Assembly: GCA_964247055.1 (NCBI GenBank)
Contig: OZ176052.1
Location: forward strand, 7,812,001-7,876,000
Reading direction: 5' to 3'
DNA: 64,000 nucleotides
Source: Paragordius varius
Taxonomy: Eukaryota > Animalia > Nematomorpha
Below are positions 25,601 through 62,994 of the stretch, piece by piece; the first letter of the stretch is position 1, and every line of letters begins with the position of its first letter. The position numbers and the translations under genes are program-made. Below the pieces are notes generated by a model. It made no database searches. It was given only the letters and a program-made list of their open reading frames with translations, and was not told the DNA's origin.

Positions 25601-28600
25601 TAATGGTATATCTACAAAAAAATTGGTTTCGATCTGAGATGGCTGTCCCTCTATGATTGAAATAAACAAAGGTTTAATCCTTTTTTAAAAAACAAATATA
25701 ATTTGCAAAATATATTATCCTTTCACTGCTTTATTCATCAGCAAAACTTGGTTTCGCGTGTAAAATATGAATCACTAAATTTAGTAATTAAAACGGTTGT
25801 GGATATAGTTAATCCGTGGCAGAGAATTTAATCGCCGTAAATTCAAAAACCTTCTGAAAAATATCCACAGTGAGTTTGATGATATCCTTTTTACACCGCT
25901 GTGAGATGGCTAAGCCTTAGCAAAGTTTTAAATATATTTTTTGATTTAAGACATGAAATTCTATTATTTATAAAAGATAACAGAAAGTTTGACGAGTAAT
26001 AGTGACAACTGGTGGGTTTTATTAGCCTACCTTTGCGACATTACTTATAAACTTAGTACTTTAAATACAAGTCTTCAAGGGAGCAAAATAATAACCCAAT
26101 TTACTAATCATTTATTTGTTTTTGAAGAAAAATTAATAATATATAAACAAGATTTTATAGATAAAATCCTCCTACATTTTTCAACACTTAAAACGATTCA
26201 TAAATAAAATATAATTTACCGTGGAGATTAATTTAATAATAGACAATCATTTAACATTTTTATCTAATGAGATGAAATTCAGATCTCAAGATTTGGAAGC
26301 TATATATAAGGAAAATCCGTAGAGAAAAAAGATATATAGAGTTTTGGCAAGTTGTGCCAAATAAATATGAAAATATTAAAAAATGTGCTCAAGTTATCTT
26401 AACTGTTTTTCCATCAACTTACACGTGTGAGACGGCATATTTAAAAATGAAGTATATCAAGAATACATACAGAAATCGCTTAACCAATAATCATATGGAT
26501 GACGTATTAAGATTGGCCTGCCATGAGGCAAAACCAAATTTGTCAAAAATTATTGGTTAATATTAAAATAAATGTTGTTATTAAAATATTTTAATTTTTA
26601 AAACTAAATGGTGCAGAAAGAGTTTTTAGCTGGATTTACATGCGACCCGCAAAAAATTCATTGTGCTGATTTAGAGTATAAATATGTGCGTATGTGTCAA
26701 ATAGCTATGGAATATTTGCCATTATAAGGTTCATGGCCCTCGAAAAAAAAATATGTTTTATTTGGCCCGTCAAATTTTTTTGGTGAGTACCACTGATATA
26801 GCAATTAAAATGTTTTCAACACATAAATAAAGGAGCTTTTATAATAATTGGCAAAAAGAATAAAAAATCAATACACAACTATAAGTAAACTTCTAGCATT
26901 TCGTTCCGCTAATTAACTTTTGATTTTAAAGTAATCTACAGATTTTTAAGGTGCATTATATCATTACCATTAATTTTAATAAAAAAATAATTAATTATTC
27001 ATTGATAAATAATTTATTTATAAATATTTTTTACGTTATATGATAATGTGCCTTTTGCGAAGAGTGCTGTGTTTTATGGTGGTTAAAAATGGATTGTGGA
27101 CTTGTTAATTCGCTTTTTGGAGCGCGAACAAAATCTGGTAATTCGTACAAACGACAGTAACACACTAATCGACGATGGGAGAGGGCTAAATTCTACCCAA
27201 AAAATATTTAAAAACAGTGCATATAAGATTGTAGTGATAGTTAAAATTGTTGAATAATAATATCAACAAATGTTGATTCATAGCCCGTCCAGTCTCTCAT
27301 TTACTAATACTGCTTCTGATCAAGTGAAATTCATATCCTTAATAAAACCTTTATTATGATCCTTTAAAAGTTATAGATGACCCGCACCAAACAGCGCTAT
27401 GCAATATAATCAATACACATTTTTATATTATATTTTTAATTTTTAAAATAAAATATAAAGGAAGTTTGATGTTTTGTCTATTTTCAGAACTTATTGAGAT
27501 AGTTTCCAAAACATCAATATCACAAAAATAGGTTAGTTGTAAATATTTTATATGTTAGGAAGTTGCAAAAAAAGATTAAAAATTTACCGGCCTATGTAAA
27601 ATTATGGCTTGTTGCAAACGCCACACTTGAGTAACATGGTCAGCATCAGGCATCAACTCTTCCTTTTTGATCCTTTCGTATATTCCACACAACAATCCTT
27701 TGGGTATATCATAACCTTCATCCAAACCTATCCAAGATAATAAAAATAAATTTTAATATAAACTATGATTCTCACATATCCAAGATAATAAAAATAAATT
27801 TTAATATAAACTATGATTCTCACATATTAATAAAAAATTGTCAGGTTTTAAATTTAAAACCACGGGTAAAAATACCTTTTAAATTTTTTACGAATTCATT
27901 CATTTTCATGCGTTTATGCGATTTGACCGTCGTATTGTGCAAATCCGTATTAAGCATTATGATCGCATACGCCAGAATAAACACAGTATCTTTTGATTGA
28001 AATTGAGCTACAGTGTTTGGATTACAGTCCGCGTACCGCTTACTAAACAGCTAAATTATAAAGAAACTATTATAAAAAAATGAAATCGAAGCATACATGG
28101 TAAAAATTATAATTGTTAAAATAATTACATTTAAAACTCATAAATTTTAAAGCGTTCGGTAAATATTCTTTGTTGCAGTAAAAATTGAAATGATACTATT
28201 AAATATAAAAACAAATATTTTTTTCCAAAAGACCGCTATACTTTAACTTAATTTGTTCAAATATAACTTATTGCTTTAAACTGCAAAGTAAAAAAAGATA
28301 TAAATTGGTAACACAATCAATTATATAATTAGCAATTGTAATTTGTAATTAATTAGTAGATATATAGGTAAAAATTGAGGTCTAAAAAGTATGGTTGACT
28401 TTTTTAAAATAATATTTGTCGTGATAATTTTACGTTTTATTTATAAAGTTTACATTTTCAATGATTTAAAATGTAATTTGAAGTTAAAAATTTTTTGCAG
28501 CACAATCAAAATATATTTAATAAATACCTCCATAATTTTTTCAATTTTTTGGGCTTCACCAGGGATCCGAAAAATAGAAAGAAACGATCTTAATGCTTCA

Positions 28601-31600
28601 TCAATCTCAAGTCCATGAAAATCAAGGCGGTTTAATATACATCTTCAATATAGTAAATAAATATTTTATATGGGTTAAAATTTATCATTGCCAAAATAAA
28701 TGAAAACATACCGGATTCTAATAAACTCATATTAAATAAAATAAGAAAATCGATTTTTAAGTTAACACTTCTATTCAAATTGGGGTATCTAAATACCCCA
28801 GACTAAATTTAAACTAAAATTTTTAAAAAACTACTGAAGGAAACGGTCCCAATTTAAATTTATGCTTCTATCCTGATAAATATTATATAAATATGCCAAA
28901 ATATCTTGATAAAATTTTGTTTTGAAAAAAAAGTTCCACCTCAAACTATTTCGACGCCATTTTTATTTTACATAAATTTTGCAAAATATCATCTTCATTT
29001 AATTTTAAAGGTAAAACTAAAGCTTATTTTTTATATAAATTACATCTAACATTGATGGAAATAGAAAAAGCGGTTTATTTTGTATTATTTTTTAATTTTA
29101 CAATTTGACACATGTCACGTTGACTAAATTTTTACCTTTCAGTTTTAGCTCAAAATAAGTATTATCAAGTATTTTTAAATAAAAATTTTTATATATTTCG
29201 GTTTATTAATGTTATATAAGTGCAAAATTTTGCCATGGTTTCGATTGCTTCCATACTTTTTAAACTATTTGATTTTAAACAGGCCTGGGGTATCCAACTA
29301 CCCCAATTTGAATCGAAGGACTAAAATGAGTGTGTTGTATCCAAGTGTTAAAACAAACACTTGTTTTGATACAATTTGTTAACCGCCATAATATTGGTTA
29401 CATGGGTTATTTTAATTGGTTAATTTAAATTTTTTTGAAATGTATTGCAGCAAGTAGGATATTTTGTTTTGTCTGGCTTTCGTATATTATTATTTTTTCC
29501 ATTTTTAAATATTTAAAAACCCATAAAATTAATAATATGGCGATTTAACAGATTGTAAAATCACTAAGAAATTAAATATGTCTAATAAAAAAATAAAAAA
29601 CTGGCAATGTACATTTAATAATACTGTATATAAATTTGCGCCAAGAATTTTCGTTAATTGTAATATTTTTGTTGTAAAATATATAAAATTTAATTATACC
29701 GTATAACTTCAACGCACATAGAATTTTGAATGGATCCCAAATATTCTCCTATTTTGGTACGTGATAAACCCTTTCGATTAGCCAAAAAACTGGCAACTTT
29801 GGTGGGATTAGCCTCTAGGAATCCCTTTTCAACTAGCAGATTGATTCCTTCAATCGGTTTTCTATGTTGTTTGCGTTTTAACAAAAGATGCTTTAACATT
29901 TTATTTATATATATACGAATTTTACGATTTTAATATTGAAAAATAAAGCGTTTTATTCTCTTTGAGATAAACTATAGAATTTCTCTCCATGCTTTATAAA
30001 AAGGAATTATCAATGCCATTATGTTTATAAAATGTAAATTGGGTATACAGAATTTTATCTATGGTATTTTGGATAATTGTGAGAGCAAAATTTCTTTTAT
30101 AAATATACGAAACTAATATTATTAAGTGGTAGTTTAGCGACAAATATGTCCTCAAAATTCTAAAACTATTTTTAACAATTTTTAAGTTTAATGGGCTCCC
30201 AATTTCATCCACATAAACAACCCGATTAGTACTTTTTAAAAAAACGTGATCGGTTTCAATTCGATTCTATAAATTAAATCCTAACCAGGTAGGGGTGTCC
30301 AACATGCAGCCCACGAAAAATATGGGTACTAACCAAATACAAATGGGAAATTTCACAATTTGCAAAAATTTTATTATAAATTTTAGCAAAATTGGTATTT
30401 CAAAAAATTAAAGTCTTGGAAAAAACGTTCAAATACAAATTAACAAAAATTGGTTAAATAATTATTGTTTTTGTTTTAGTAATTTTTTACAGTATGTTTA
30501 AAATTAAATAAAAATATTAATTATTTTCGAATGCGGTTCGCCATTTTTTCACGAAAATGCAACTTGCCCCATTTGTGTTGGAAACTCCTGTTATAATCGA
30601 TAAAACTAAAACTTACATCATACCTATTAATAAATTTGATTGATGTCTTATTTTATTAATCAAAAATAGTTAATCTAATTACATTTGTCAAATACATCAA
30701 CTTGTCTTGTTGAAAAAATTATATATAAATAATAGGTAAAAATATTTTTTTTATAAATTCTTCAACAGTGAACCTTAAAAATCAATAAAATCTTTTCTCT
30801 CAATCCTTTTAATATGATAGTAATTTTACAAGATCTCACATCTACTATTCTATTGCGTATTATGACCCCAAAGCCTACTAATTCCTGTAATTTGCGTTAA
30901 AAAAATAATTGAAGGAAAAAATAAAATGTTTATTGAACAGCAATAAAATATTTTAAAAAACCAGAGATGCGTTTGTGCTTACCTGTTAAAAGTGTTCAAA
31001 CAGATTCTATACAATCGCTTCCTAGCTGTATCATTGCTATTATTATGGGAATTAGTGTGTTTTGGTTCATTTGTGGAATCTGAATGTGAGATATGCATAG
31101 TGGATAATTCTTTGATATTGTCTATAGAGGTGTGTTGAAACAAAATTATTGATTTGTTTATATTAAATTGAAAAATCTTGTATTAGGAATCAAAAAAGTG
31201 AAAATTTTGTTTGCTATTGATGTGTTTAATAAAATATTAATAAATGACCATTAGAGTGATTTCTGATACAGTTAAACCTGTATTTTAACGCTAAACTAAT
31301 ACCTATCAATAGTCAATAATGCAATCTATAACTTAACTAAATAAAAGTTGTGAATTTATGGAGAAGAGGAATCGGACAGATAAAAGTTTACAATATACCA
31401 TTTACAGTTTAAATTCGCCCTAAAAAGATGGGTTTTTTAAATTAAAATTATTTAAAATTAAAATAATAATGAAAAAATAATAAACTATGCCATAAGAATA
31501 TATTTCATATTAAGGATGAGTTATATTAGCCCGATAACACATAACTTATTTTTCGGGTAAATTCCAATAGTTCAAGGGTGAATTTGAAATGTATTTGGAA

Positions 31601-32537
31601 GAATTAAAACTAAACATACTTTACACGGGTTTAAAAATTTATTGAACAATAATCATAAAGGTTTTAAGACTATATAAATAAAATTTAATTTTCAACCACA
31701 TTTAACTGTAAAAGTACTGACCGACTATAATTTAAGGCGTATTTTAATTTAATCTAGATAGTATCTCAATTATAAAGTTAACGAAATGGGCTTCATAAAA
31801 TTAACTAGAAAAAGTTAAAAAATGACCTCACAGAAAACAATGTGCTCATAAATTATATTCCTATTTATAAAATTAACTTCTTTAAATACTAAACATGTTT
31901 TAAAAATAGCTGCCTGAAATCATAGAAAACCAATTAACGGCGGTCTCCTGTTATAATTATTCTTTTCCGGTCAAAAAAAGAACTTTAACCAAATTCAGTT
32001 TATTTTTGCTTTCCACTTGAATATAAAAATATTCACTAATAGAAGTGATAAATAAAAAATGAATTTAAATATACAATTCCGAAATTTACCTGCAAGTTTG
32101 GGTGATAAACAAATTTTTTCAGTAAACTCCTGCGAAGTTTTATGCAAATGATGTTTATGGTGCATGTGATATCCATTGCTTGTTGTGCTTGTAGTAGATG
32201 TTAAATGCCGTAAATTTAAATGCTTTATATTGGACACGACGTTTGTCAAAGATTTTGCAGAATTGTCAATATGAGAATGGTTGTTATTTTCCGAAAAATT
32301 ATTAATTTTCATGTCATGCTGGTGTCTATCGAATTTATTTTCAAAATATTTTATATTCATACCACATTCTAAATTGGCATTAAAACTATCAATCGATCTT
32401 TGATACAAATGATGAGTGATTAGGGGTAAGCAAGGTTTTGGTTTTCCATGTATTTTTGATGATTTCGAAGAAGCCGGAGACGATGAGATTAATTTTGAGC
32501 TATTCTTATTATTAATATTGTTGGTGGTAGAATTCAT
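22619..32537 (-). CDS. IQSEC: IQSEC/BRAG (schizo/loner)-type Arf guanine nucleotide exchange factor, Sec7 + PH, at least 11 exons, about 814 aa; 5' end uncertain
   Basis: Minus-strand exons: 32090-32537, 30983-31121, 29700-29861, 28528-28642, 27876-28050, 27588-27727, 27035-27192, 24210-24383, 23449-23918, 23048-23169, 22619-22960 (2445 nt). Motifs: RKRLYRICLNTFNRKP, FRIPGEAQKIE (catalytic Glu), ILAYAIIMLNTDLH, IYERIK, family-typical HRRLVCYCRLYE and LHQREVFLFNDLL, DRTKFVEDLKEAI. The frame is open upstream to 32612, so earlier exons are possible. Confidence 0.9.
24502..26795 (+). mobile_element. Full-length decayed hAT (Buster/SPIN/GTF2IRD2-like) DNA transposon in an IQSEC intron, antisense to the host gene
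   Basis: TIRs CAGTGATACTCA (24502) and TGAGTACCACTG (ending 26795); perfect 8-bp TSD ATATAGCA at 24494-24501 and 26796-26803. Frameshifted transposase from about 24915 to 26560: RSFKKEW, YFSIAIDSSPD, DGCPSM, FHCFIHQ, VRWLS, FPSTYTCE. Confidence 0.93.
27731..27826. repeat. Perfect 2 x 48-bp tandem duplication in an IQSEC intron
   Basis: TCCAAGATAATAAAAATAAATTTTAATATAAACTATGATTCTCACATA at 27731 and 27779. Confidence 0.95.
28766..29347. mobile_element. MITE family B (about 580 bp, TTAA-flanked, piggyBac-like)
   Basis: TTAA|CACTT ... AAGTG|TTAA, with the internal inverted motif TTCAAATTGGGGTATCTAAATACCCCAG / CTGGGGTATCCAACTACCCCAATTTGAA. Near-identical copies at 60966 and 63027. Confidence 0.75.
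30290..30590. mobile_element. MITE family A copy, reversed
   Basis: TAGGGGTGTCCAACATGCAGCCC ... ATTTGTGTTGGAAACTCCTG; TSD not preserved. Confidence 0.65.
31398..31591. mobile_element. MITE family C copy, shorter, in an IQSEC intron
   Basis: TA|CCATTTACAGTTTAAATTCGCCC ... TTCAAGGGTGAATTTGAAATG; interior in opposite orientation to 4165-4487. Confidence 0.6.
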
Positions 32538-34815
32538 TAAGCCCGCATTTTTTTCAAGATTTTTTTCTGTTAATGTTTCTGTTATAATACCATATATTAT
32601 TTTTAACAGAGGTTATTAATAATCTAGTTTCCGTTGATTTTGTGTGGTTTAAAACTAAATTACATATATAAATAATAGATGATTTCAAATTAATCTGAAA
32701 GATATTTCTATTATAAAAACAACAAAAAAGGATGATTAATTCACATCATATGTAGTAGTATTTCAGTAAAAAAATTATTATGTTATAAGGAAACGAATAA
32801 CTTTTTATCACTACTCCTCTATTAAATAAAAATTAAAAATAAAATCAGGATTTTGTGGTATAAATATATGAACTCTTTACATCGAGAAATTACATATATA
32901 TATATATTACGCATTACGTATACATATAAAAATGTCTGTCTATTTTACATTTCTTAGTATTATCATCAGCATCATCTATTGTTCCTAGAAAATCATAAGA
33001 AAAAAAAACAATTGCAATCAATCATAGAACTAAACCGAACAATATTTTATTTAATTAATTTTTTACATATATAAATATTAATTAAAAATTAATCAAAATA
33101 GACTTATTGTTTTGTAATGTAACTTACTCTCTTTTTAACGTGAGGGTTATCAGGGTTAGTTTTCGTTGCAAATGGATTCGATTTTTGTTTTATTATTATT
33201 TCAGTTGGAGGAAGGATTAATTTGTAAATTAGGCATAAGGTGTATAATTTTATGTGTGTGTGGTTGAATTAGTCTTATTCGGGATTAAAATTTGTAATGA
33301 TTTTTACTATTATAAATTATATTAAAAATACGTCGTGGATGATTTTTAGCTTTTTCTGAGGTTCAATAATCTTTTGATATTTCATCGATTAAATGCAAAT
33401 TATTTTACATTATATTATATTTATAAATAAGTTTTTTATTAAAATATAAAAAAAAAGATGGAAAAAAGTGAACAAAATTGATGAAAAGATTCAAAAAATT
33501 TGTTGGTTAGCTGGCAATCTTTTCTCGCGCACGCATGTGCATAATATATGATGATAAAAATATAAATACAGAGACATTAACTAGAAAATGGTTAGAGAGA
33601 TGATGAATAGAGATCCCAGTAAAAATCAATATTTTTCAGTATTAGCAGCGCATAGATTTTTATGTGGTCTCTTTTTATAAAAATGAATAAATAAAAATAA
33701 AAAATGTACTTAACAAAAGCCAAAAATGATAGATAGATTAGTAGAATGAGATGGTACTATGATATTAAAATTATTTTTTTGAAATACTTTTAAGTACTTA
33801 CAATATTATTATGATGACAAACGTTCAAAAATTTATTAACATAAACAAATATATTAATGACGTTTTGCGATCCACTTCAAATATGAATATATAATGAATT
33901 CCGAATAGCGTCTCTGATAAAAGCTGTCTTTTGCTTAATTTTTCAAAGCTTGGAAAACTAAATTTCACAATTATTTAATACATAATGAGGATTTATTATA
34001 TAAGGCGAGCGACAAAATAGGATAATATTCAAAAAATATTTATAACATTTAAGAGTGTAAAATACATTGTTTGTTAGCTTGTATTGTATGTGAGATAGGG
34101 CGTAAAATATTTTTTATTTTATAAATAATAAGGACCAATTTAATATTTTATTTATATATAAATGAAAATTTAAGAGCGTCGTCGTCCATTGGAAATGTCT
34201 CATGGGAATATTTTTTATTTTTTGGTAAACAGATATGCAGTGATCTCAATTTATTTGAAACTTATGAAATTAAATTTTAAAATAAATTAAAAAAATTCAT
34301 ATATGTATTTATAATAAAAAATTGTTTTTCTTTATTACGCAATGAATGTAGGTGGAAACATTACATGTGGCGAATGCAAAAAAATGTCAAAAAAAAATTA
34401 TTTATACTTTTTTATAAATAATTATTTTTTAAATCCCTACTTACTCTTATATACATTATCACATAAATTATATATAGTTAGTTTATATTAAAAACGCATT
34501 TTTCATTTTTGTAAAATAATCCTACATTTATTTTCTCAGGTATGTAAAAGTGAAGACGTATATAATTATAAAGTAGTATATAATATAAAGAAAGGTAGAA
34601 AAGGCACATCAAGGCTTTAAAAACTAAAATATAAGATAAAATGTCACTTGATAACAAACAAATGCCTTCTTGTGAAAAAATTAACATTTTTCTTCCTCGT
34701 CTGAAATTAAAATAAAATAACTAATATAATTATATATAATGAAATGATAATTTTGTTCAAATAATACAAATATTTTTGATGACGCGTAACTTAATTCTCA
34801 TATATTTATTGTATA

Positions 34816-37623: not shown

Positions 37624-40600
37624 TCATTCACACACATTATTAACAATGTCAAATGCATTGGGTGGGTACTCATTTTGATCATTAGCTCCATTAAAATGAA
37701 TGGAAGACGAAGGAAAACAGCCATTCTTCATTTCAAGTCCATTTTCGCTGGTAAAAGAGGTTGGTATTTTCATGGCACCGCTTTTCAAACCATTTAAACT
37801 TTTGTTATGAACAAAACCGTTTCCCGTTGATATCATTACCAAACCATCATTCGTTATACCATTATTATTGATATTCTCACTATTTTCAAAGGCATTTTCT
37901 GCCACGTATTGATTACGGTCATAATGTCCATTCGAAAAGTTACTATTATCATTATTATGGTTAAAAGCACCTGACAAGTTGCCATAACAATATTTTTTTG
38001 TGTTATCCAGATACTTATGATTATTTTCATGATATAGCGGCTCAGAAGCACCATTTGGATGATAAAAAAATCCATTTTCTCCAACAAATTTATGAGCATG
38101 CTGAGCAGCAAAATTATGGTCAGGAGATGTAATAAATACATTATCTCCTTGTTCTTCTCCATTTTCCTTCCCACCGCCGACCTCATAATACCCATAATAA
38201 TTTTCATTTTTATCATCAATCATTTGATAATTAGAATTAGAATTACTGGCACACCTAACTTTATTGCACTGGGCCATTTCATCACTAAAACCATTGGTTT
38301 CACTCATTTCTGCCGCGTTTTTTGTCGAGAGATGTTTCGCTTTATCTAAGCCATTAACGGTATTTAACGTGGTGGAAAGAGTAACAACATTAGCGGAATT
38401 ATGCGCTATAGTTGCACCATTCTCACTACCTATTAATACTGTATTGTTTGCATTGGCCACACACGGTAATAAACCGTTTTCGGGTCCATTTTCTTTTTTG
38501 TCCTAGGAAAGAACGTGAAACAAAATGTTAACATAATAGTTTAACGTTTAAAGAATTATAGCTAATAATTGAATACAAATAACCTATATTATTATTTCAT
38601 TCAAAAGTTCCCCATTATTAACTTGAAATTATGTTGATATTTAGGATGGTTTGCAGTTTACCTGTTATTAAGCTTATTATTTTTATATTTTGTTTTAAAT
38701 AAAACACACATTACTTAAAAAACATGCCATAGGATAGCAAACCAAAAAAATCTACCTATTCAAACAAAAATACTTTAATGTCATAGCTTATGGCAAATAC
38801 TGTTTAACTTTTAGTAATACTTTATAATAATTTTACTATAAGATAAAATTTATGAAAAAATGAACATAACTAATTAAATGTAAAAATATGCATTCTATAG
38901 TTTTTTTATTCCTTATATAGCGTAAAAATTTAAATTTGCCATAAACGCTTTTAATACACATCTGCCCAGAGCTATATTGATGATGAAAAAATTGTGCAAT
39001 TATGAGCGTTCGAATCTCATACGCATAGAGCAATTACTTATAAAATAAAAACCATCATTGAATAAAATCATCCCTTAAAACTAACTTACCCCAATTTCAC
39101 TATTAGCTGACCCGAGTGATTCATTATTGCTATTGCCTTGCGATGACATGGATGATGAAGTGAGTAACACTGTTGTATTGGTAGTAGATGACACAGCAGT
39201 ATTAGTTAAGGACATCTGTCCTCCCATAATAAGAGGGGTAGGGGGAGCAGAGCCAGCAGCATAGATGGGGAAAAATGAGCCATAACCATTACATTTGTTG
39301 TCATTCATTACTAATTTCGTCGTCGTCGTCATGTTACTGCCAGATTGGGGTGGAGTGGGCGGCCCAACATTATGGGGTAAGGGTAGGGGTGAAGGTGTGG
39401 CAAAAAAATATGCTCCGGCTGGAATCATATTCTATAAATCATTGATGGTAAATAATTTATACATATAGTGGTGTAAGACAAATTACATATTTTGATATAA
39501 TAACATGCTACTTTTAAATAAATCTCGTACCCGAGATATTTGCAACACTATATAGAACGCGCCATGGCGGTCGTTGAAATAATCGCAATTTGGTCAAGAA
39601 ACCAGTAAAATATTCGGAAAAGATATATATAATTAAATATGATTAAAAATCAATGAATAGAATTTTATTAATGAGGGCGATTCAAACCTGTTTGCTACAA
39701 CCATATGTTTTGATATTTTGAACAAAAATTTATTCGTTTTATATAAATTTAAATAATTTTAAAGTAAATTTTAAACCGCTCTTTGTTGGGAAGACAATGG
39801 TGTAGGGTATGCATTAGGTAACATGGTGTGATTTGCAATCTAAATAAACACAAATTTAATATGCTTATAAAAGCGTGCTTACATTCGGTGTTAAGGGAAG
39901 CGTTGGCATAAAAATTGGTTGAGCAGCATAAATAATTGGTAGATTCATCTGTGAAAAATGCAAATTAAATATTTTTGTTATAAAATTTATACATAATAAT
40001 TCTTCAAATGTATTTAAATTAAGCAATTCTGTATGTGGTGATTTTAGATAGGGTAAAGACATGAATAAGTAGTGATAATGAAATTGTGAGGATTCGAAAT
40101 GTATTTAAAGTAATGCAATTAATACAAAATAACTTTTGAAGAAAAATTGAAATATATCATTTGCACTTCAAGAGTGTTCTTAAACACTTTAAGATAGTTC
40201 TTGTACAGTTCAAGTTGATTGAACACCAAGTTGGTCCTTAAAATTTATAAATTTTGATTTAACCATAATTTTTGCATTTATTTTTTATTTTTTTATTAAC
40301 CTAATTTTTTTTATTTATTATATATTCATTCATTAAAAAATAAAAAATTTTATTGAAAAGAAACTTTTTTGTTTCAAACTATTTTTTCAATTGAACAAAA
40401 TTATTAACTTTTAAATATTTTTAATGAAAAATTGTAATTAATAACCCAGAAAACTCATATATTTTTTCATTTCGTGTTAACATCTTGTAAATATCCAAAA
40501 TTATTTAAAGAAATTAATAAAGATATACGGTTTCTCATAGATTAAAAATTGATATCGATTTAAAATTTATGTTAAATAATAGAAAATAGGTTAAAAGCAA

Positions 40601-43033
40601 TAAAATAGATGAATTATTTACGATTTAATTGATAAAAGTTAAAAACAAAACGAAAAAGTCAAAGGACCAACTTGAAGTGTTCAAGGGCACTTTTGAAGTG
40701 CAAATGGTATATTGAGTAAAAAAAATAAACCTGGTTAGAATTATTGGTTATGGGTGAGGATATACCACTTGACAAATTGTTTGCCCCATTAGTATTATTA
40801 ACGATTCCGTTTTCAGATAGCGCCCCGTTACTTTGATATTGAATCGAATTGCTGTTGCTATTGCTTTTTTGATGATGAGTAGGATAAATACCACCATTAA
40901 AATTGGTAATATTATTATTATGATTATTAATGTTCATATTGGGATTTGGTTGTAACACATAGGCTGTAGGGGTCATTGGTGTGGGTGTTCCGAATCCTGG
41001 TAGCCCATAGTTTTGATTTTGACCTGTGGCTGCATATGCCGCTAACCAATTGTTTAAGTATTCATCTATTGTGCAAAAATGCAATACAAACACGATAAAT
41101 GTAGCAAATATTATTTTTGCAAATGAAATGAGTTAGTAAAAGCCAAAACTGTATAATTTATTATCATGGTCAGCAGTAAAGCGAATTTAAACTTTCATGG
41201 GTAACGATTAAAATTCAACTGTTTTTTTAAAATAAAAGTGATTAGTCCCTCAAAAGCGTAAGCTGGTTGCATATAAAGATTTAGAGATCAGACAAACAAA
41301 TAATTAGCATTATTGTGGTAGGTGTATTGTTTGGGCGGCATTCATCATTATTTTTACAAATCACGAACTATCAAACGGTCTGCATCTGAAAATAAGACCA
41401 ATTAAAAAGCGGGTTAATGATTCGAACACCAAATTTTCGGGCTAACATTTTTGCAAGTATTTTTAAAAAATAATACATGGGCGTTAAAAATATGGATATA
41501 AAATGACATAAATATAAAAAACAAAAATATGGAATTACTTAAGACAGCTATAATTTTTTGAAATTAGTTAAGCATTTTGGGGATTTTTAATTATAGCATA
41601 ACATTTAAAAATCATCAGTCAAGCAACGATCCAAATAATTTCGTTAAAACTTTCGAATAAAATCGAATATCTTTGTAGCTTTGATCGATTAGCAAGTGCA
41701 AACATAACCGAATTTCAAAAGCCCCTTGAAGTTAATTTTTTGAGTATAATATTATAATTTCAAGTCAAACGTCATATATCTCAAATTTTTATGCGTTTTT
41801 AAAAAATTTTAAATGCCCAGCTTGCATGCTGATCAACCAAATTAATATCAACAATTTCCAAGTGGTGTGAAAAAAGTGTGAAAGTAACTTTTTACTGTTT
41901 ATTGATGGCGATTGTTGCATCATTTTATCGCCGGGATTTCCGTCAAAAGCTGTAGCGGTTGATTGAGCAGAATTAGATAAGGGCTGTGCTCCTCCTCCAA
42001 TCACAATATGTTGGGGTTGAGGCGTGGTCGATGCACCCAAAGGCGACGAAGCTGCATGATGAAACCCCAAAGGGATCAACCCTGATGGTGCCGGTGTTGT
42101 TTGATGTACTACATTTTGTTGTTGCAAATATTGTGGATTAATCACATTATTACCAAACAAGGGACTATTTGCATTAGCGTTGCTCATCATTAAGTTTGAT
42201 GGAAGAGTTTGTTGTTGAGGATGAAAAATTAATTGATTGGCGGCTGCTGCTGCTTGGTTTTGTTGAAAACTTGGAAGTAAAATGGTGGTGGCCGTGCCAT
42301 TGAGTGACCCCAGCGCAGGGAAATAATGGTGAGTCGCGCCGCCCTGGAAATGGATGTTTTGTGTTGCTTCAAACATACCATTTGTTGCAAGGGAGCCACC
42401 TGGGCCAAATGCACATGCTCCCATGGTAGCGGCTTGCATTATTTTAGTAGCAGTAGTCATATTTGATTGCTACAAATATTGTTGTAAAAGTAAATTAGTA
42501 AGCTGTGATTAACAAAAAAAGGATTTTTAAAATTTAAGAATTTAAAATTTCTATTGTATTTACGAGTTAAGCGACCAATTTAAATATTAGCAAAGTACTT
42601 GTTTTTTGATGGCAGGTCCGACATTCAATTTTCGGTCTTTAAAGGAGAGGGAATCCGACTAAAAATAATCATACAAAAAAGTATACCATTGAATTAACTT
42701 TCTTTACATCTTCTTCGGATTCAAATGTAACAAAACCATAACTGAAATTTAAAATTTATATTACCCTTTGGATATACCAGCTCGGTCATATATAATTTTT
42801 ACATCTTTAACACTACCGTATTCCGAAAAAAACTTTGATAATTCATTTTCTAAAGTCTATCAAGATTTTAAAATTTTATTAACTTGAGTAGGGATACCAC
42901 CAACAAAAATTCTGTTAGGAATAACCACGCCGTATTTGGGTGGATGGGTATCATTTATTGGTGAAATCATATTGGATACCATGTCTAAATTGTTTTCTTT
43001 ACTAATCTAATAAAATAAAAATTTATTTACCAT
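37624..43033 (-). CDS. boule: Boule (DAZ-family RRM RNA-binding protein) with a very long low-complexity C-terminus, 10 coding exons, about 842 aa
   Basis: Minus-strand exons: 43031-43033 (ATG), 42884-43006, 42765-42856, 42687-42741, 42599-42658, 41896-42469, 40731-41065, 39883-39948, 39090-39431, 37624-38502 (2529 nt). RRM reads PKYGVVIPNRIFVGGIP-TLENELSKFFSEYGSVKDVKIIYDRAGISKGYGFVTFESEEDV-KDRKLNVGPAIKKQ, typical of Boule/DAZL. The RRM call is firm; linkage of the last four exons rests on splice-phase compatibility. Confidence 0.88.
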
Positions 43034-44042
43034 TGTTAATTATCATATAACGATGTCAAAAATAAATAAAACGGTGTCCAATCATATAAAAATGTTTTTG
43101 GAAGAAGCGTTAATTGACCAATTTAGATACAACCTTCATGCTAAATAGGTTATTAATATATGCAAATTTGTTTTACCTTAAACTTTTTTGTCAAAAAGTT
43201 GGATACTTTTTTTAACCTTTAGGTGTTGCTTTTGCTAAAATTTTTCAAAACCACAAGTCTTTTTAAGTACCATGTTGTGGGATAAACAAACAAACAAATG
43301 CGAATAAACAATGTGGTACATATGGCGTAAACAAGAACATTATTATTTTTAGTAAGATATTCAGAATGTTCTAATTAATTAATTAATTAAAATGCGGTTT
43401 ATATGAAAAGATTAAAATATGATTGGAGACTTATTTTATTAATTATATATTTTTATTTGTGAAATAATTTTGTAGGTTAAGATGTTTAGGCCTAAAAATC
43501 TTTTAATTTAAATCAGTGAAAACGGAACTACTCAGAACCAACCTCGTCTCATAGAATGTTTCCGATGGGTTGTTTAACTTTTCGGGATCAAAATAATTGA
43601 AGCAACATTAAACTTCCGCCCAACGTAATTGTTATATTGCACTAGAATTTAGTTAGTCCGTATGTAACTCTGCTTTAATTTTAAATCATTTATTTTTAAA
43701 ATATTTTATACCTTTAAACTCTCGATTATCGAATTTATTTTGAATTAATGTATATTATTTAAAAATTTGGGTCCCTCAATTAAGAAACCATTTTTTATCT
43801 CTCAAAAAATCATAGATGGTGTGCTTAAATCTATAGGCTTACTTTCCATGTTTACATTTAAAAGTTACATTAAATTTTGTGAAGCATTTAAAGATGCCCT
43901 TGTTAAATATTAGAAATAACAAAAAATAATTATTTTTTAATATATTAATTAAATGTGTTATATGTATAGTTTAAGCATAATATACATTAAAAATAAATTG
44001 GCATCATCAAAAACATAATTATCTATGAAAGTCCATATAGAC

Positions 44043-47435: not shown

Positions 47436-50400
47436 TGTAGTTGATATTACAACATTGCATCATTGTATTGTTATCTTACATCATATTATTATTATATTAA
47501 TCGCGTTTGGCGTTTATGTCGTGCGTCATTATTCGTGGAATTCTCATATAAATCTTCGTACAATAGACATATTCTTACAATTGTGACGCACATGCATGTT
47601 AAAATTATAACTAATAAAAAGTATAAATATCACGAAATTTTAATAAATTAATTATTATTTGTAATTTGACCATTTATATTTCATTTGACGATGGATGGAG
47701 ATTTCAATGAAGGATACGATGACACTTATGATTTTGCCACCTACATCAGATATGTCAAAAGGGTTATGATCTCCAAAAATGTTGATATTAATGATGATAA
47801 TATCAAAGTACTGTTTTTGGCTGGAGCTGGTCTTAAAACAATAAATAAGATCGAAACAATGATTTTTCCAGAATCAATTGATGATGCTCCTTGGTCCATA
47901 ATTCATGACATTGGTAAACCTTTCTCACCCGCCAAGTCTGTCTTCGCTGCAAGGTTTGAGTTTGCTCGTTTGCGGAGAAAGGATGGAGAAACATACACGG
48001 AATTTTTCCAAAGAGTCAAGAGTGTGGCGGAAAAGGCTGAATTTTAAACAGAGGTGGAGGAGAGAATTAGAGACAGTTTCGTGGCTGGATGAAACTTGCA
48101 ATCATTGGAAGTGGATCTTTATTTACGATTCCCGGATGGGAAGTGTGATGGGAAGGCGGTGTCATTAACCACCATTGTCGACATGGCCTTGGCCTAGGAA
48201 CTTGCAAGGGCCGATATTGCCTCCCATGTGTCGTCAAGCAGTATCCTCAAAATTCAAAAGAATCGATCGAATAATAATAATAATTATAAAAGTAATAATG
48301 TGGAATATAAAAAAAATGATGATGGCAATAATAATAAATGGAAGTGGAGATGTGGCAAATGTGGTAAATCGCATATATCTAAACAATGTCCCGCGTTCGG
48401 AAAAATATGCCACAATTGTAATAAAAAAATCATTTTCAGGCAATGTGTCGCCATAAAAAACGATATAGTGATAATATAAACGCTAATTGAAATAAATGGG
48501 GCACACAAGCGAACATTTGCGCTACGATTAATGGCCAAGCTCTCAGTATGGTTTTTGATACTGGAGCTGCTGCTTCTCTGATTAATAAAAAGTCTGGAAG
48601 ACGGTGGGAGCACCGTTACTAAAAAGTGCTCCCAGATTAACTTTCTACGGAAACAACCCAATCAAACTCTTGGGAAAAACAGTTGTCAATGTAACAATGG
48701 GAAGTACGAAGAAATTAGAATGTTTTGTGACGGAAGAAGAGCTATCTCCGATATTTGGCTGCCTTGGATCATTGGTTGTGGCATGACCTTACCGGATAAC
48801 GTGAAAGTTAATCAAATAATATCTAATAATAATACTGATCATGATGATGTATTCAAGCGATTTCCAAAACTCTTTAGTGGGGAATTGGGTTGTTACAACG
48901 GTGATCCTGTTAAATTGTATGTTCGATCAGATGCAATACCAAAAGTCTGCGCTGCACGGCGAATTCCATTGGCACTACAGAGTAAAGTAGAGATGGAAAT
49001 GCAGAGACTGATGGACCTGGGGATAGTGAGTCCCGTTGATCGTACACAACACCATGTGGAATGGGCGACTCCTACGGTTAACGTCGTAAAAACTAATGGG
49101 GAAATTAGGGTGTGCGCTGATTTCCGGGTAACAATCAATTCTTTGATGGAGAACATATCTCAGATTATCCCGATATTTGACACGACCGCGTCTAAATGTG
49201 CGGGATCCACATGGTTCTCGTCCATTGATTTAAAGGACTTACCTTCGAATTCCGGTGGATGAGGAGAGCAAAAAATATTTGGTTATTATTAGCCCGATGG
49301 GATATTTCCAATTTAATCTTCTACCATTTGGATTGAAGGTTTCCCCCATGCTTTTCCAGAGAATAATGGATGAGGTACTCAAAGATTACAGGGGCACAAT
49401 GGCTTATCACGACGATGTATTGATTGTTGGTAAACGAAAGATGAACATGATAAAAATCTTAACGAGACCCTAACAAGGATACAAAAATTCGGTTTTACAT
49501 TAAGGAAAGATAAACTGAAACTTTATCAGAACAATATTAAATTCCTGGGTTTTGAGCTATTAAAACAGGGAATTCGTCCTGTACAAGATAAAATTGACGT
49601 CATTACGAAATGTGCGACACCTACCAATAAAATTGAGTTAAGATCATTTTTGGGATTGCTCAATTTTTATGAACGTTTTCCTGGCTTACATGTCAAAGTT
49701 AGTAATCTATATGCACTAACAGGATCCAAAAAGGAATGGAGATGGTCACAAGAACATCAAAATGAATTTAAGCAAGCAAAAAACTTAATATCAAGAGAAT
49801 CTTTACTTGCCACTTATAACATATATAATAAAACAATAATACAAGTGGATACGTCTACAAAAGGCTTTGGAGCTGTACTTCTGCAAATGGAGAATAAGAG
49901 AATGGTACCAATTGCATTCGCGTCAAGAAAATGCCAGAATGCAGAGAAAAATTATTCTGTGATTGAATTGGAAACTAAGGCTTTGCTGGGTTAGAAAAAT
50001 TACATTATTATATATATGGCCACAAATGTGAGATCTGGTCAGATCATAAGCCGTTAGTTCATTTGTTCGGAAACAATCGGAAGTTAAGTGATATTAAAAA
50101 CTGTAAATTGTTAAGATGGATCTACAAGGCCGCAGCGTATGATATTGATATGAAATATATAGCGGGATCGACAAACATGGCCGATGTGTTTTCAAGACTT
50201 CCCGAAAAGAGTCAGACACCATTAGCCAATGATGATGAATATGTGGCCGAAAAAAATCCGACAAATCGCATTCAAGGATTTAAATTTAAATAAAACCCAA
50301 ATAAAAAAAGCTTGTTTGGAGGATAAACTGTTTAAACGATTACGTATGGCACTTAAAAATAATGATTGGTCAACACCGGAATAATCCGCATTCAAAGCCG

Positions 50401-51390
50401 GGAGAAATGATCTTAAACAAGCTGATGGTTTCTTATATGTTGGTGATCGGTTGGTTATCCCAACAACTGCGCGAAGACTAATTTTGGCTTGGTTTCATGC
50501 TGGACATCCAGGGATCGTTGCTATGAAAAACACAGGTCGTTGGTGTTTTGGCCCGAAATGGATAAGGACATTGAAAAGTTAGTACACGACTGTCAGTGTT
50601 GTCAGAGGAACAGGGCGAACATTGCTGAGAATCCGGTATATAAATGGAACTTCAATGTGGGAATATGGGAAAGACTCCATGTGGACATCGCGGGTCCAAT
50701 GTGTGGTAAATATTGGTTGGTTTTAATTGACGCGTTCTCAAGATGGGTGGAGGTGGAGATACTTTGAAGTATTCCATCTGATGTCATTTTGAAACAATTG
50801 GAGAAATGGTTTTCCTCTTATGGTTTTCCAAGAATGTTAGTATCTGATAATGCTACTTATTTCAAATCGTTAAATTTTCGGGAAAGGATGACAAATTGGA
50901 AAACATGTGACGTCTGCTCCCTATCACCCAAGGACGAATGGTTTGGTGGAAAGAGTGATTTACACGTTGAAATCCAGATTTCCTTCTACGATGATGACTG
51001 GCGTAAAGAGTCAAGAGGCTTTAAATAATGTATTATTGACCTTCGAAACTGATGGCATAATGAAATAAAGACGACTCCCACATCGTTGTTTTTGAAGAGG
51101 AACATCAACCACCATTGAATTGGTTGCAAGATAAAGAAGCGCCTAAAGAAAGTACACCACCGAGACCGTTAAGAGAATTTACACCTTCACAGCCAATATT
51201 TATAAAGAATGAGATATCTAAAGGATGGCGACCGGGAACGGTTGAAGTAAGAACGGGGCCTTTGTCGTATGAAGTAAGGGATGAAGAATGGAAAGAGATG
51301 AGGAAACATGCCGATCCACTGAGGCGGGATGGTGAGCGGAGTGAGGCCCCCAGGTGTTACCCAGATCGAGTCCGCAAACCTCCTAAGCGT
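47436..51390 (+). mobile_element. Decayed Ty3/Gypsy LTR retrotransposon (Mag-like gag-pol), many frameshifts and stops; candidate 5' LTR 47436-47579; no 3' LTR found
   Basis: Gag 47685-48047; double zinc knuckle CGKCGKSHISKQCPAFGKICHNC; protease MVFDTGAAAS; RT WATPTVNVVK and AYHDDVL; RNase H VDTSTKGFGAVLLQ, DHKPL, ADVFSRLP; integrase HAGHPG...CQCC, HVDIAGP, VSDNA. The order PR-RT-RH-IN indicates Gypsy. The LTR candidate (TGT...TACA) is low confidence. Confidence 0.92.
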
Positions 51391-52711
51391 GAAAGAGACC
51401 TAAAAAGCTCTATGGGAAATATCCGCTGTAATCTCCTAACCTGGTGCCATCTGACTGTAAACTCTTGGAAGTTCTGCAAAAACTTTCATGCATTTACCCT
51501 GTCAGGGAATATTTAAAGTTTTTGGTTTTATAAATCAAATAAAAATCATCCTTTTCTTGTAATATATTATTTTTAAAGGGTGAATTTACATAATATTCGT
51601 AAAATTTATTAATTAAAAGTAAGTATGTTCCAAATTTGTTTCTGTTTTGGAGGTTAGAATAGGGAGTAGTATACAGGGTCGGAAGAGGCTGAGTTGTGAT
51701 TAAATGGTGCTTTTATGGATTGAAGCAACGGGCGCCATATAAGCATTGGTACACTTTTATATAAATGAAACTGCCTTAGAACCGAGTTTATATGAATCAA
51801 TTAATAAACTTAAATAATAATAATATTTTGAATATGATCTCGGTCAAAATATAGAAAATTTGCAAATATCTTTTTATTATTTCATTTAATGCAAAATAGA
51901 AGATGAATTAGTAATTAGTTTTATGAAACAATAGTGTTCGGACTATCATGCTAAAGATTTATATCCTGAACGGAAAAATCACATATCCTACATATTAAGC
52001 TACATACCAAATAATTAATTTATATTCATATGGTTTTTATTATTAGATTTCTTTCCGCGTGTAAAAAAAAATAAAAACGTAATTATATTTATAGTATATA
52101 AAAAACGCTAAAAATGTTTTAACTTACTCTTTCTTACAAAATATATTTAATTTATAAATTTTAAATCCATATTTCTTTTGCACGTTGGATGGATGGATGT
52201 ATTAATAAATAATATATAGTGGTTTGTAAAATATGCTGCTGTCAAATTTTTACTTTATTTGTTAAAATTTTCATTCGTTTTATAAATATAAATGATAGTT
52301 TTTCCTGCTATGTTGCATATCTTTTTTATATTTATTTTTTTTTAAATTTTATTACAATGTTGGGAATCTTTACATTTTTCCCTTTTTTTGAATATAAAAA
52401 AAATTAAAAATATCCACTTGAATTTTACGTTTTATATATGGAAACTGAAGTGACATTTACCTACTTATTTCAGTGAGTTTGAAATTTTTCCATATCTCAC
52501 ATAAATAAATTAACACCTTTCTTTTTTTATGATTAATTCATAATTGCAAATTGAATGACCATTTAAACGCAAAATATACATGTATATCAATTACAATTTG
52601 ATTCTCTATACCTACATATATGCCTATGGAATAACGATGATACATTTTTGTCTTTTAATGTGTAAATTGATTGCAAAAAAATAAAACTTTTATTCAAAAT
52701 TCGGTCGATCA

Positions 52712-53264
52712 ATGTCAAAATTATATATCCTCCGTTTGCATATCATTCTATTATGGGTAAAATTATCACCCATATTCTCAAATTCAATCATCAATTCAAA
52801 GAACATCTTGCCTTATATCTACTCAACAGATAATAGTTCTCAATCTTTAATTCAATCTATAAACCAACCCAAAGTTGAAATTGTAAAACAACAACAGGGA
52901 AATTCCATCATAAATGATTTCGATAAGGATTCGTGCGATGAAGGTTTTTTTTACCAAATATTTAGTTTTTAACTTATGATGAAATTCCATTTTGAAATTT
53001 ATTATTATCAAACATATAAATTGCTAAGGAGCAAAGTTTCGCTTATAAAATATATTTTGTCCGTCGTAATGAATTCCGCAATATATGATATATTATAGTT
53101 TTACCCATCATTATTTTTTGAAATAATTTGTTTTAAAAGTACATACTTTTAACATAACGTTTGCGGATCAAAAACGGTATAGTATAATGGAAAATTTATA
53201 TTATAAAATTAAATATTACACATTATATAATGAACGAATTCAGGACCTGATAAATTATCACGAA

Positions 53265-53327
<63 letters not shown>

Positions 53328-56300
53328 GTTTCATAATAAAAAAAATATCCAAATTATTAATATATTATATCTAGCTTTTAAATTTTAAGGTGTCTTATTG
53401 GGTGATATTATTCTAACTAAGGAAGACATACAACATGTTCTCACTCAAGATACCAATTTGCCACACCACATTAAATGGCAATTAGAAACGAATTGCACGA
53501 TAAAACATGTGAAGGAATCAATTAACTCCGATGAAACAACTACTTTGTCAGCATCAGATAACATTTTAGCTAGGTTAAAAAGATCAACTTCTAAACATCA
53601 AAGAGTTCATCGGAAATCTAAAAGAGCCGTCACCGCGCTCAAAAATAGATTGTGGGATTATGGAGTCATACCATATGAAATTGATTCCATATTTGACGGT
53701 ATATTTTTATCATTGTAATTTTGTAATTGTAAATCATTTGATCGAAAATTATGTATGATGGCTTTAAAGGGGTTTCCTGTCCTTGCAATTTTTATTTTGA
53801 TTAATTTTTGGGAAATTGTTTTTTGGCAAAATAAAATGGTGATGAGGTCCTCGTCCACTGATTTCTTTTAATTTAATATTAGGGAAAAATTAACATATCT
53901 TATTTATTTATGCGTAAATTAAATTTAAAAAATAAATAAATATCAGTTTAAAACAGATGTGTCTAACACAAATGGCTTCGCGGGCCGTATTATTTTTAAA
54001 AAAACTGGCGGGCCACATTCACAAAATATATGGGCAAAAACTAATATTTTCTTAGATCTTAAACATTAGATTAACCTATATTTATTTTAACAATTTTTGT
54101 TAGTTCGAATGCCGAGATTCGCAAAGACTTTAAAAAAATGTTTTAAAAAAATCAATTTTACTAGGATCTCTTATCTGTATTATAACTTTTTCGCGGCAGA
54201 AGGCCCCATGACGCCCGCGAGCCGCGTGTTGCACCCCAGTTTTAAAGTAAACAAATCCCATAAATATATTGATAAAATCATTATGCGAGATAAAATATTT
54301 GAATATTTTTATTTACTGTCTTATCTTTGGTGCATAATCACCTTTTATATTCATCCTCTATAAAAACAAAAATTATTTGGAAATATATTTCCAATTGCGT
54401 TTATTTATGTGTATGATTGATTTAGGGGCCCATAGAACTTTGTTCATGCAAGCAATGAGACACTGGGAAAACTTTACCTGTATTACATTTGTCGAACGCA
54501 ATGCTTCACTTCATGACAATTGGGTCATTTTTACAGAAAGACCATGTGGGTAAACTTGATTTTGATTTGCTTAATTTTTATGCAATGGTTAAAATGTAAG
54601 TTAATTACTTTCTATAAAATTATTTTATCATAGATGCTGTTCATTTGTGGGAAAACGTGGTTCCGGTAGTCAAGCGCTATCGGTCGGTAAGAATTGCGAC
54701 AAATTTGGAATTGTAATTCATGAAATCGGTCATGTGGTTGGATTTTGGCATGAACACACGCGTCCTGATAGGGATAGAAACGTCATTATAAATTACGAAA
54801 ATATTTTATCAGGTAATTTTATTTCTCCCTAAAGTATAATTATCCATAATATTATCTTTAAATATATATATAACATAATGTTATCGATAATATTGCAATT
54901 ATTATGGCTAATATAATTTTTATTACAGGCCAGGAGTATAATTTCAAAGAAAAATTCAGCAGTGAAGTCAACAGTTTGGGTGAGCCCTATGATTTTGGTA
55001 GCATAATGCATTATGCGAGAAATACATTTGCAAGAAGTACTTACTTGGATACTATTCTGCCACGTTATGCCGATCGATATGGACATAGGCCGGAAATAGG
55101 TCAAAGAGCACATTTAAGCACAGGCGATATACGTCAAGCCAATATACTTTACAAATGCACACAAAAACATGGTATCATTTTTTTGATGCTCCCTAAAATT
55201 CATAGAAAATAAATTTTTTTGAGATTTAGGTTGTAGCAAAAAATACGAGGGATGATTAAATTATATATAAGTACTTTTAAATTTTATACTATAAAGAAAA
55301 TACTTAGATATGATTCCAAAACAAATTACTTTACTGCTTTTTAGATGTGTTGCTAGCTCATTAGCGGTCATTTAATCAAATTATCCATATTATATAACAT
55401 TATTTTATTGTACCATATTTTTCTAGGGTGCGGAGGGACTCTGTTTAATTCTTTTGGGTATATAACATCACCCGATAGTGTTGCAAATCCAAATTCAATC
55501 AATGAAGCAACTGAAAAAAGTATAACATGTAGGTGGCGTATATCTGGCGCTTATGGTCAATACATAGTTTTCAATGTAACCAAATTTCATTTACCCTCCC
55601 CAAGTGAATTAAACGATGCTAAAAATTGTGGTGAAAATTACTTAATGATACGAAACGGATATTATGAGCTTGCTGAATTAAATGGTACTTTGTCTTTCAT
55701 AAATTCTATTCCCAGTATGTGGAATATATTTTAATATTTAATTAGACAAACTTTAATAAAATAAGAATTTAAATTGATAATCGCAAATTTTACATAAAAA
55801 TAGAGTCTTTAATACCCTATGCGTTTGAAATACTAAAGGAAAAAGATTAACCCCATTTTAATAGATATATATCAATTTTATTCCCCTTTACATGGTCATA
55901 TATTTTTTGTTTAAAAATGTTCAAATATGTCACAAGTCTTAACATTGAAACAATAAATTTCGTATTTTATATCTTGTATAAAGATATAAATAATAATAAA
56001 GTTTTAATGACCTAAATTTTCCGGTGCTTAGTTTTTAGTATAAAAATATAAATATCTAACATTATTAGCATTATAACACAATTTGTGAAAAAAACGTCAA
56101 ATTTTATGAGGTCACACAGTGAACCTCAAGGTTTTATTTGTTGTCAAAGATATGTTTTATTACTACATCTATATGCCTAATTAATTTTCATATTTATATT
56201 TGACGACAAATAATATATTTGAAACTAATAATTTTAGCTATATACTGTGGACAGGTAACTGTACCAATCTCTATACAATCAAATGGGCCCCATCTATGGA

Positions 56301-62136: not shown

Positions 62137-62994
62137 TCATGAATAATATTTTTCGATTGGAGAGTTTGCAAAAGCTTCATATCCCTTCTTCAACGAAGAC
62201 CATATATTAACTAACGTTATAATGTTATTAGATTGACTAGTGTTTTCATTAGTTTTCTTATTATGTTGTTCTTTGTAAAATTGATAAAATCCATTAAAAC
62301 CACAATACAATTTAAGAGCCGTATCGCTGGTTTGTGATGACCAGGGTACACCATACTTCCAAAATGTTACATAATGTTCACAGTTTTGCGTCAGCATGTG
62401 ATAAGAAACATCTTGGTTCAATAAGCTACGTGCGTTTTCTAATGCCCTTTCACTAGAAAAGGGTTTACATCCCCTTAAACGCGCCTCGATCTCTTTGTTA
62501 TTAATGCGAATCAATGATTGCCCAGCAACCAAAGCAAATGAATCTCGAGCCAATCTAGCTATTGTTCCCTTTAAAGCTTCTGTGATAGAGGGAGTAGGCC
62601 TGTTTAATTCGTTAGTAGGTACGGGGATATCATTGTCAAAATTATTGGTAAGTGAAGGGAATACGATTCTGGACATTGATTGTATAATGCTTCCAAAGGA
62701 GGAATCAAATTGTTTATCGGATCTTTTCGTGCGATTACAGTTATCAATGGAGGAAGATTCTTTCGCTTCAAAATCAAAACCATTGTGGGCCCGCACATGA
62801 ATAACTGTAGAACCACCTTCGTATATAGCCCAATGGTGATATAAGCCACGATTATATTCAATCAAATCTCCTGGTTTTGCCAAAGGTAAAATAACATCCC
62901 AAGTTCTAAAAGGATTTAGATTATCAATTCCTATATCAATTGTCTCATCAAAGCTTTCAAAAACTTCGAATTGGTTTGATTCATCGGTAACCAT
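62137..62994 (-). CDS. LRAT-domain phospholipase A/acyltransferase (PLAAT/HRASLS-like), single coding exon, 285 aa
   Basis: PGDLIEYNRGLYHHWAIY (His54), VIHV (His66), INNK and QNCEHYVT (Cys205) give the H-H-C triad of the LRAT/permuted NlpC/P60 family. An in-frame TAA lies directly before the ATG. Confidence 0.88.
   Translation of the reverse strand: MVTDESNQFEVFESFDETIDIGIDNLNPFRTWDVILPLAKPGDLIEYNRGLYHHWAIYEGGSTVIHVRAHNGFDFEAKESSSIDNCNRTKRSDKQFDSSFGSIIQSMSRIVFPSLTNNFDNDIPVPTNELNRPTPSITEALKGTIARLARDSFALVAGQSLIRINNKEIEARLRGCKPFSSERALENARSLLNQDVSYHMLTQNCEHYVTFWKYGVPWSSQTSDTALKLYCGFNGFYQFYKEQHNKKTNENTSQSNNIITLVNIWSSLKKGYEAFANSPIEKYYS

Follow-up and report, generated by a model that had tools for sequence, protein, structure and literature searches.

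The boule gene of the hairworm Paragordius varius (Nematomorpha) raises a question about how small an animal intron can become: What are the four segments of 23–28 nt that interrupt, one after another, the beginning of its coding sequence, and how could they be removed? The gene lies in a stretch of 64,000 nt of contig OZ176052.1 (assembly GCA_964247055.1, positions 7,812,001–7,876,000), which we call the window and whose features are collected in table 1. The answer that we consider very probable, judging from the sequence and its comparison with other animals, is that this nematomorph boule gene is functional and that the segments are genuine ancestral introns of the major class (U2-type, GT-AG), eroded to their present size and presumably removed by the ordinary major spliceosome.

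Table 1. Features of boule and neighbouring genes in the window
Feature	Position	Strand	Length	Phase	Remarks
boule exon 1	43031-43033	-	3 nt		Coding part is the ATG alone; equal ATG-only exon in Gordionus, Priapulus, and Owenia
boule micro-intron 1	43007-43030	-	24 nt	0	GT..AG; directly 3' of the ATG; in-frame stop at 3' end
boule exon 2	42884-43006	-	123 nt		Reaches the RNP2 motif of the RRM; searched alone, finds boule proteins
boule micro-intron 2	42857-42883	-	27 nt	0	GT..AG; two in-frame stops
boule exon 3	42765-42856	-	92 nt		92 nt also in all five intron-bearing orthologues
boule micro-intron 3	42742-42764	-	23 nt	2	GT..AG; immediately upstream of RNP1
boule exon 4	42687-42741	-	55 nt		RNP1; same length in Gordionus, Priapulus, and fish, but 58 nt in Owenia and Holothuria
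boule micro-intron 4	42659-42686	-	28 nt	0	GT..AG
boule exon 5	42599-42658	-	60 nt		Completes the RRM; same length in Gordionus, Priapulus, Owenia, and Holothuria
Rest of boule	37624-42598	-			Introns 5-10 of 129, 830, 782, 43, 345, and 587 nt; boundaries in the low-complexity tail less certain
AGA		+			7 introns, the first of 127 nt
AGA micro-intron	20172-20199	+	28 nt	2	Exons on both sides match human AGA (1APY) colinearly to the residue (20-68 and 73-108)
AGA micro-intron	20313-20340	+	28 nt	1	Exons on both sides match 1APY colinearly to the residue (73-108 and 110-144)
Integrin alpha	1611-17671	+	1300 aa		27 introns
IQSEC-like Sec7 gene	22619-33250	-			Partial; 3 reliable introns
BMP1/tolloid	52700-61990	+			15 introns; first exon not found
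LRAT-domain gene	62137-62994	-			Single exon

A preliminary description of this DNA had given coordinates, lengths, and GT-AG ends for the four segments, all of which proved exact; the chance that all four would carry such ends is approximately 5e-11, with equivalent placements allowed for. Excision of the segments yields a continuous RRM of boule type within an intact frame of 864 amino acids. Each of them contains an in-frame stop, and retention of any one ends translation at 8, 49, 73, or 96 amino acids, respectively, in agreement with the earlier statement that the last three must be excised to restore the RRM. Their interiors also differ in composition from the neighbouring exons, having a GC content of 0–12% versus 27–42%. 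Joint skipping of exons 3 and 4 was considered and rejected, for it keeps the frame (147 nt) but loses the core of the RRM. Upstream of the ATG there are two GT..AG stretches of 36 nt (43141-43176 and 43235-43270, minus strand) that could be introns of the 5' untranslated region.

The gene as a whole, according to a model guided by hand and searched exon by exon, extends on the minus strand from 43033 to 37624 in 11 exons. Its membership in the BOULE/DAZL family is indicated by both the boule-type RRM and the conserved exon structure, and exon 3 alone has the RRM of DAZL as its best match among PDB structures (2XS5, E 9e-7). The closest relative that we have found is the boule protein of another hairworm, Gordionus montsenyensis, which gives the best score for exons 2–5 summed (374 vs. 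353) and scores 65 versus 42 for exon 8; the database search found no boule protein from hairworms beyond Gordionus. Similarly, the only database match of the LRAT-domain gene of the window is from Gordionus (48% identity), in which this gene and boule both lie on OX940786.2. Judging from these protein scores, the closest protein relatives of the two genes are therefore nematomorph. The product of 864 amino acids is much longer than the ~380 amino acids of the BOULE/DAZL products compared (381 in Gordionus, with the same CE terminus), because it has a long low-complexity tail rich in N, Q, G, and S, encoded at 37624-42469 (minus strand).

Where do the four introns come from? To answer this question, each orthologous boule protein was mapped exactly onto its own locus, thereby defining the sites, phases, and lengths of its introns. 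Introns 1–4 occur at the same sites and in the same phases in Gordionus (42, 50, 40, and 43 nt; XP_065320728), Priapulus (7883, 266, 289, and 3033 nt; XP_014666741), and Owenia (925, 1202, 1197, and 1326 nt), and so do introns 2–4 in the sea cucumber Holothuria (4956, 1878, and 2939 nt) and the fish Aplochiton (186, 142, and 122 nt). Introns 2–4 are thus common to five animals of four or more phyla, and intron 1 to the first three; the first intron of the fish and sea cucumber genes lies 8–9 codons into the coding sequence and not right after the ATG. Consequently, the equivalence with vertebrate introns that the preliminary description had stated holds for introns 2–4 of Aplochiton but fails for intron 1. 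Identity of sites and phases across phyla implies that the boule introns are old bilaterian introns which have shrunk, rather than recent insertions. The proposal of shrunken ancestral introns, for which an alignment of intron positions had been suggested as a check, is in this way supported, the Paragordius introns being shorter than every orthologue compared. In other words, Paragordius shares with the BOULE/DAZL genes of Gordionus and Priapulus the RRM, the intron positions and phases, and the exons of 92, 55, and 60 nt, and departs from them in the size of its introns and its product. The beetle boule locus was discarded as an uninformative comparator, since its RRM introns have been lost.

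All ten boule introns of Gordionus measure 40–50 nt (L005:10001-11574), with no difference in size between the front and the back of the gene. Such lengths are themselves under the usual animal minimum, and the preprint on the Gordionus genome is silent on introns. Judging from this single sister species, shrinkage may have proceeded in two steps, down to ~40 nt and then below 30 nt at 5' ends.

The short class is present in a second gene of the window. We have modelled 62 introns altogether: six of 23–28 nt, one of 43 nt, and 55 of 64–2715 nt, with a median of ~260–280 nt, in line with the earlier remark that this genome still has introns of kilobase length. Besides the four in boule, the micro-introns include two in AGA, whereas the modelled parts of the integrin alpha, BMP1/tolloid, IQSEC, and LRAT-domain genes have no intron below 64 nt. 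In the AGA micro-intron at 20172-20199 the AAG acceptor at 28 nt is required, 4 nt past a TAG at 24 nt, because cutting at the latter would lead to an immediate stop; AGA would thus bypass this TAG even though boule has micro-introns of 23–24 nt. The 43-nt intron, the only one of 29–63 nt in the window, lies 3.1 kb into boule (39840-39882, minus strand) and has a counterpart of 47 nt in Gordionus. Mobile elements are also present. Boule intron 7 carries a foldback (MITE-like) element at 40151-40713, having inverted arms of 52 nt (83%) and a depth of more than 1000 times the single-copy level; it is probably polymorphic, as a contig of run X4 joins 40120 to 40689 in an apparent empty site. By inspection, a decayed Ty3/gypsy-like retrotransposon occupies 47685-51516 (plus strand), in which stops and frameshifts interrupt the gag-, RT-, RNase H-, and integrase-like parts, and a transposase-like remnant of hAT-type appearance lies within an IQSEC intron (25269-25637, plus strand).

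How could such introns be removed? The GT and AG ends, together with the restoration of the frame at an orthologous site of the same phase, are those of the major class; by inspection, the minor-class motifs, namely the RTATCCTTT donor and the TCCTTAAC branch site, are absent from the four boule introns. We infer that the major spliceosome would act by intron definition upon signals reduced to a GT(A) donor, an A/T-only body without a fixed branch motif, and a (T/C)AG acceptor. Across the six micro-introns no TRAY position is common, the branch point was not located, and no donor has a G at position +5, versus 30% of the 56 longer introns of the window; the latter value shows that donor sites are weak window-wide. 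The distance between the 5' splice site and the branch would be less than ~22 nt in the boule micro-introns. Human extracts need ~50 nt for this distance, and 46 nt abolished splicing (PMC6692369). Given that an intron of 23 nt leaves less than ~20 nt, the geometry of the human B complex cannot hold unchanged, and the machinery of this animal presumably copes with a tight lariat, like that of myxobolids, dicyemids, and ciliates. Such tolerance, for which the preliminary description had assumed a modified spliceosome or recognition mode, may need only small changes, by analogy with the myxobolids, which splice introns of 22–27 nt with a conserved branch-recognition region of U2 snRNA and U2AF (PMC13644364), and with Stentor, which has kept all snRNAs while changing its branching factors (PMC9505925). 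No spliceosomal gene or snRNA was found within the 64-kb window. As far as the window extends, the tolerance would be used near gene starts only, and unspliced boule copies, with their premature stops, would be expected to enter nonsense-mediated decay.

The confinement of the short class to gene 5' ends in the window, a feature absent from the preliminary description, needs to be considered in depth. None of the six micro-introns is more than 534 nt from a start codon. If a boundary is drawn at 600 nt from the start, six of the nine introns on the near side have 28 nt or less, versus none of the 53 on the far side; the Fisher p of this split, 1.4e-6, makes the evidence look stronger than it is, since the short class occurs in two genes only and its introns are not independent. 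Among the 19 introns below 100 nt, the six shortest are also the six nearest to a start (p 3.7e-5), and when ranks are taken only within boule and AGA the probability becomes ~9e-4 (1/210 × 4/21). The ATG, and not a mapped transcription start, served as the origin of these distances, which are estimates for BMP1 and IQSEC.

One explanation, which we regard as a distinct possibility although short of probable, is that the clustering reflects mutation and not splicing: The spliceosome would accept 23 nt anywhere, deletions linked to open chromatin and germ-line transcription would shrink promoter-proximal introns, and transposons would re-expand those downstream. High-copy elements do lie in downstream introns, as exemplified by the probably polymorphic foldback of boule intron 7, and the 43-nt intron has survived deep in the same gene. 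Yet the minimal class of downstream introns heaps at 64–95 nt (12 introns) and includes nothing below 43 nt, a distribution that resembles a second floor more than random expansion.

Alternatively, and in our opinion rather doubtfully, splicing itself may depend on position. Introns in the first ~0.6 kb would then use a route coupled to the cap or promoter that permits 23–28 nt, for example, a hand-over from U1 to U6 before full engagement of U2, in which the cap-binding complex or factors bound to the polymerase would assist, while downstream introns would need ~40–65 nt or more. Such a mode would refine, not replace, the main reading. It is consistent with the split and rank statistics of the window, with the lack of any split in the uniformly short introns of Gordionus boule, and with the 5' clustering of 37-nt microintrons in the liver fluke (PMC6530080). 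This evidence needs to be weighed against the restriction of the short class to two genes, the counting of distances from the ATG rather than from mapped transcription starts, and the first AGA intron of 127 nt, which stands ahead of the short ones. As a tentative proposal, one major spliceosome could thus serve two size regimes, a promoter- or cap-proximal one of 23–28 nt in series and a distal one of ~40–65 nt and more, the split having arisen within Nematomorpha from a uniform condition of 40–50 nt like that of Gordionus. If this were true, the hairworm with two regimes and Gordionus would form a natural pair in which to compare what determines the minimum length of introns.

It is unlikely, in our estimate, that the introns are real but spliced inefficiently, their retention and decay limiting or regulating boule as in microsporidia, in which the median splicing efficiency is ~25% (as cited in PMC13644364). 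In-frame stops are indeed present in all four introns, including both of those with a length that is a multiple of three. However, these stops are expected from composition alone, without excess in the micro-introns (48–78% per intron in shuffles); moreover, inefficiency at four introns in a row would allow little full-length mRNA to form, and AGA, a housekeeping gene, carries the same class.

We consider it very improbable that the segments derive from assembly error, insertions in a dead gene, or excision at the DNA level. Public runs from three studies, encompassing other individuals or samples, have yielded gap-free contigs across the introns: a contig of run X1 (42671-43350) spans introns 1–3, one of X3 (42775-43063) introns 1 and 2, and two of X6 intron 4 (42546-42696) and intron 1 (43005-43155). 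Runs X1, X3, X4, and X6 cover introns and repeats as genomic DNA does, and among the joints listed for the DNA contigs none skips the micro-introns. The presence of the segments in DNA from three studies argues that they are not assembly errors. The preliminary description had named a pseudogene as grounds for abandoning its reading; the frame is intact, with a terminus like that of the Gordionus protein, and the coding indels listed between individuals are all multiples of three (38229, -6; 38276, +3; 40917, -6; 42239, -3). Taken together, gap-free contigs, such indels, and the open frame speak against an assembly error and give no evident sign of a pseudogene, and the GT..AG ends fall at ancestral intron sites. 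What could be said for this reading, and against the main one, is that none of the listed public runs that contain the boule stretch is recorded as RNA, and that presumed RNA runs with the same species label contain next to no boule words; this absence is unsurprising, as expected for a germ-line gene.

Non-spliceosomal removal by cleavage and ligation of the IRE1/XBP1 or tRNA kind shares with our case nothing but length (XBP1-type introns have 23–26 nt) and is most implausible, given the canonical GT-AG ends at spliceosomal positions and the lack, in the boule micro-introns, of IRE1/XBP1- or tRNA-type structures, of stem-loops exceeding those of shuffled sequences (z -0.8 to 0.3), and of any Rfam match.

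Returning to the reading of eroded introns spliced by the major spliceosome, how does it compare with known systems? A survey of 51 animal genomes dated September 2026 reports introns under 30 nt in myxobolids and Dicyema only: The median is 27 nt in Henneguya and 22 nt in Thelohanellus and Myxobolus rasmusseni, with Dicyema japonicum also below 30 nt (PMC13644364). The preliminary description had named dicyemids and ciliates as precedents for introns of 20–30 nt, while missing the myxobolids. Paragordius resembles these animals in being parasitic and in having introns of 23–28 nt at conserved ancestral positions, with a donor reduced to approximately GTa, little polypyrimidine tract, and short neighbours. 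It differs in one feature of their regime, since the short class constitutes the genome-wide median of those highly reduced animals and is a minority of six in 62 introns, confined to 5' positions, in the window of this transposon-rich bilaterian; moreover, it has a related hairworm, Gordionus, at 40–50 nt. Trematodes and cestodes, with microintron peaks of 36–37 nt in Opisthorchis (PMC6530080) and Taenia (PMC5036155), similarly combine a distinct class of mutually adjacent short introns with long ones, and Opisthorchis shares the 5' bias. However, the hairworm introns are ~10–14 nt shorter and belong to an unrelated phylum, and the 36-nt class of Taenia lies toward 3' ends (PMC5036155). With ciliates and microsporidia the hairworm would share spliceosomal removal far under the human distance limit, besides 3n introns with stops, but those organisms are unicellular with near-uniform tiny introns, such as the 15–16 nt of Stentor (PMC9505925) and the tiny introns of heterotrichs (PMC13685798), whereas those of the hairworm are of 23–28 nt and variable. 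The Stentor values also imply that the earlier phrase "near the physical limit" was overstated.

We found no paper on intron size in hairworms in the literature. On the sequence evidence, the hairworm would raise to three the animal lineages with introns below 30 nt and would be the first ecdysozoan among them; the distinct contribution of this locus lies in four consecutive tiny introns whose exact orthologues occur in a related hairworm and in four further phyla. In practical terms, gene finders with a minimum intron of 30–40 nt would give wrong annotations at the 5' ends of genes like these. In evolutionary terms, the hairworm genome is not miniaturised, so that the view of tiny introns as a simple by-product of compaction would lose ground, and the introns of 40–50 nt at the same sites in Gordionus would allow the question of what sets the minimum intron length to be put to the test in a comparison of two spliceosomes.
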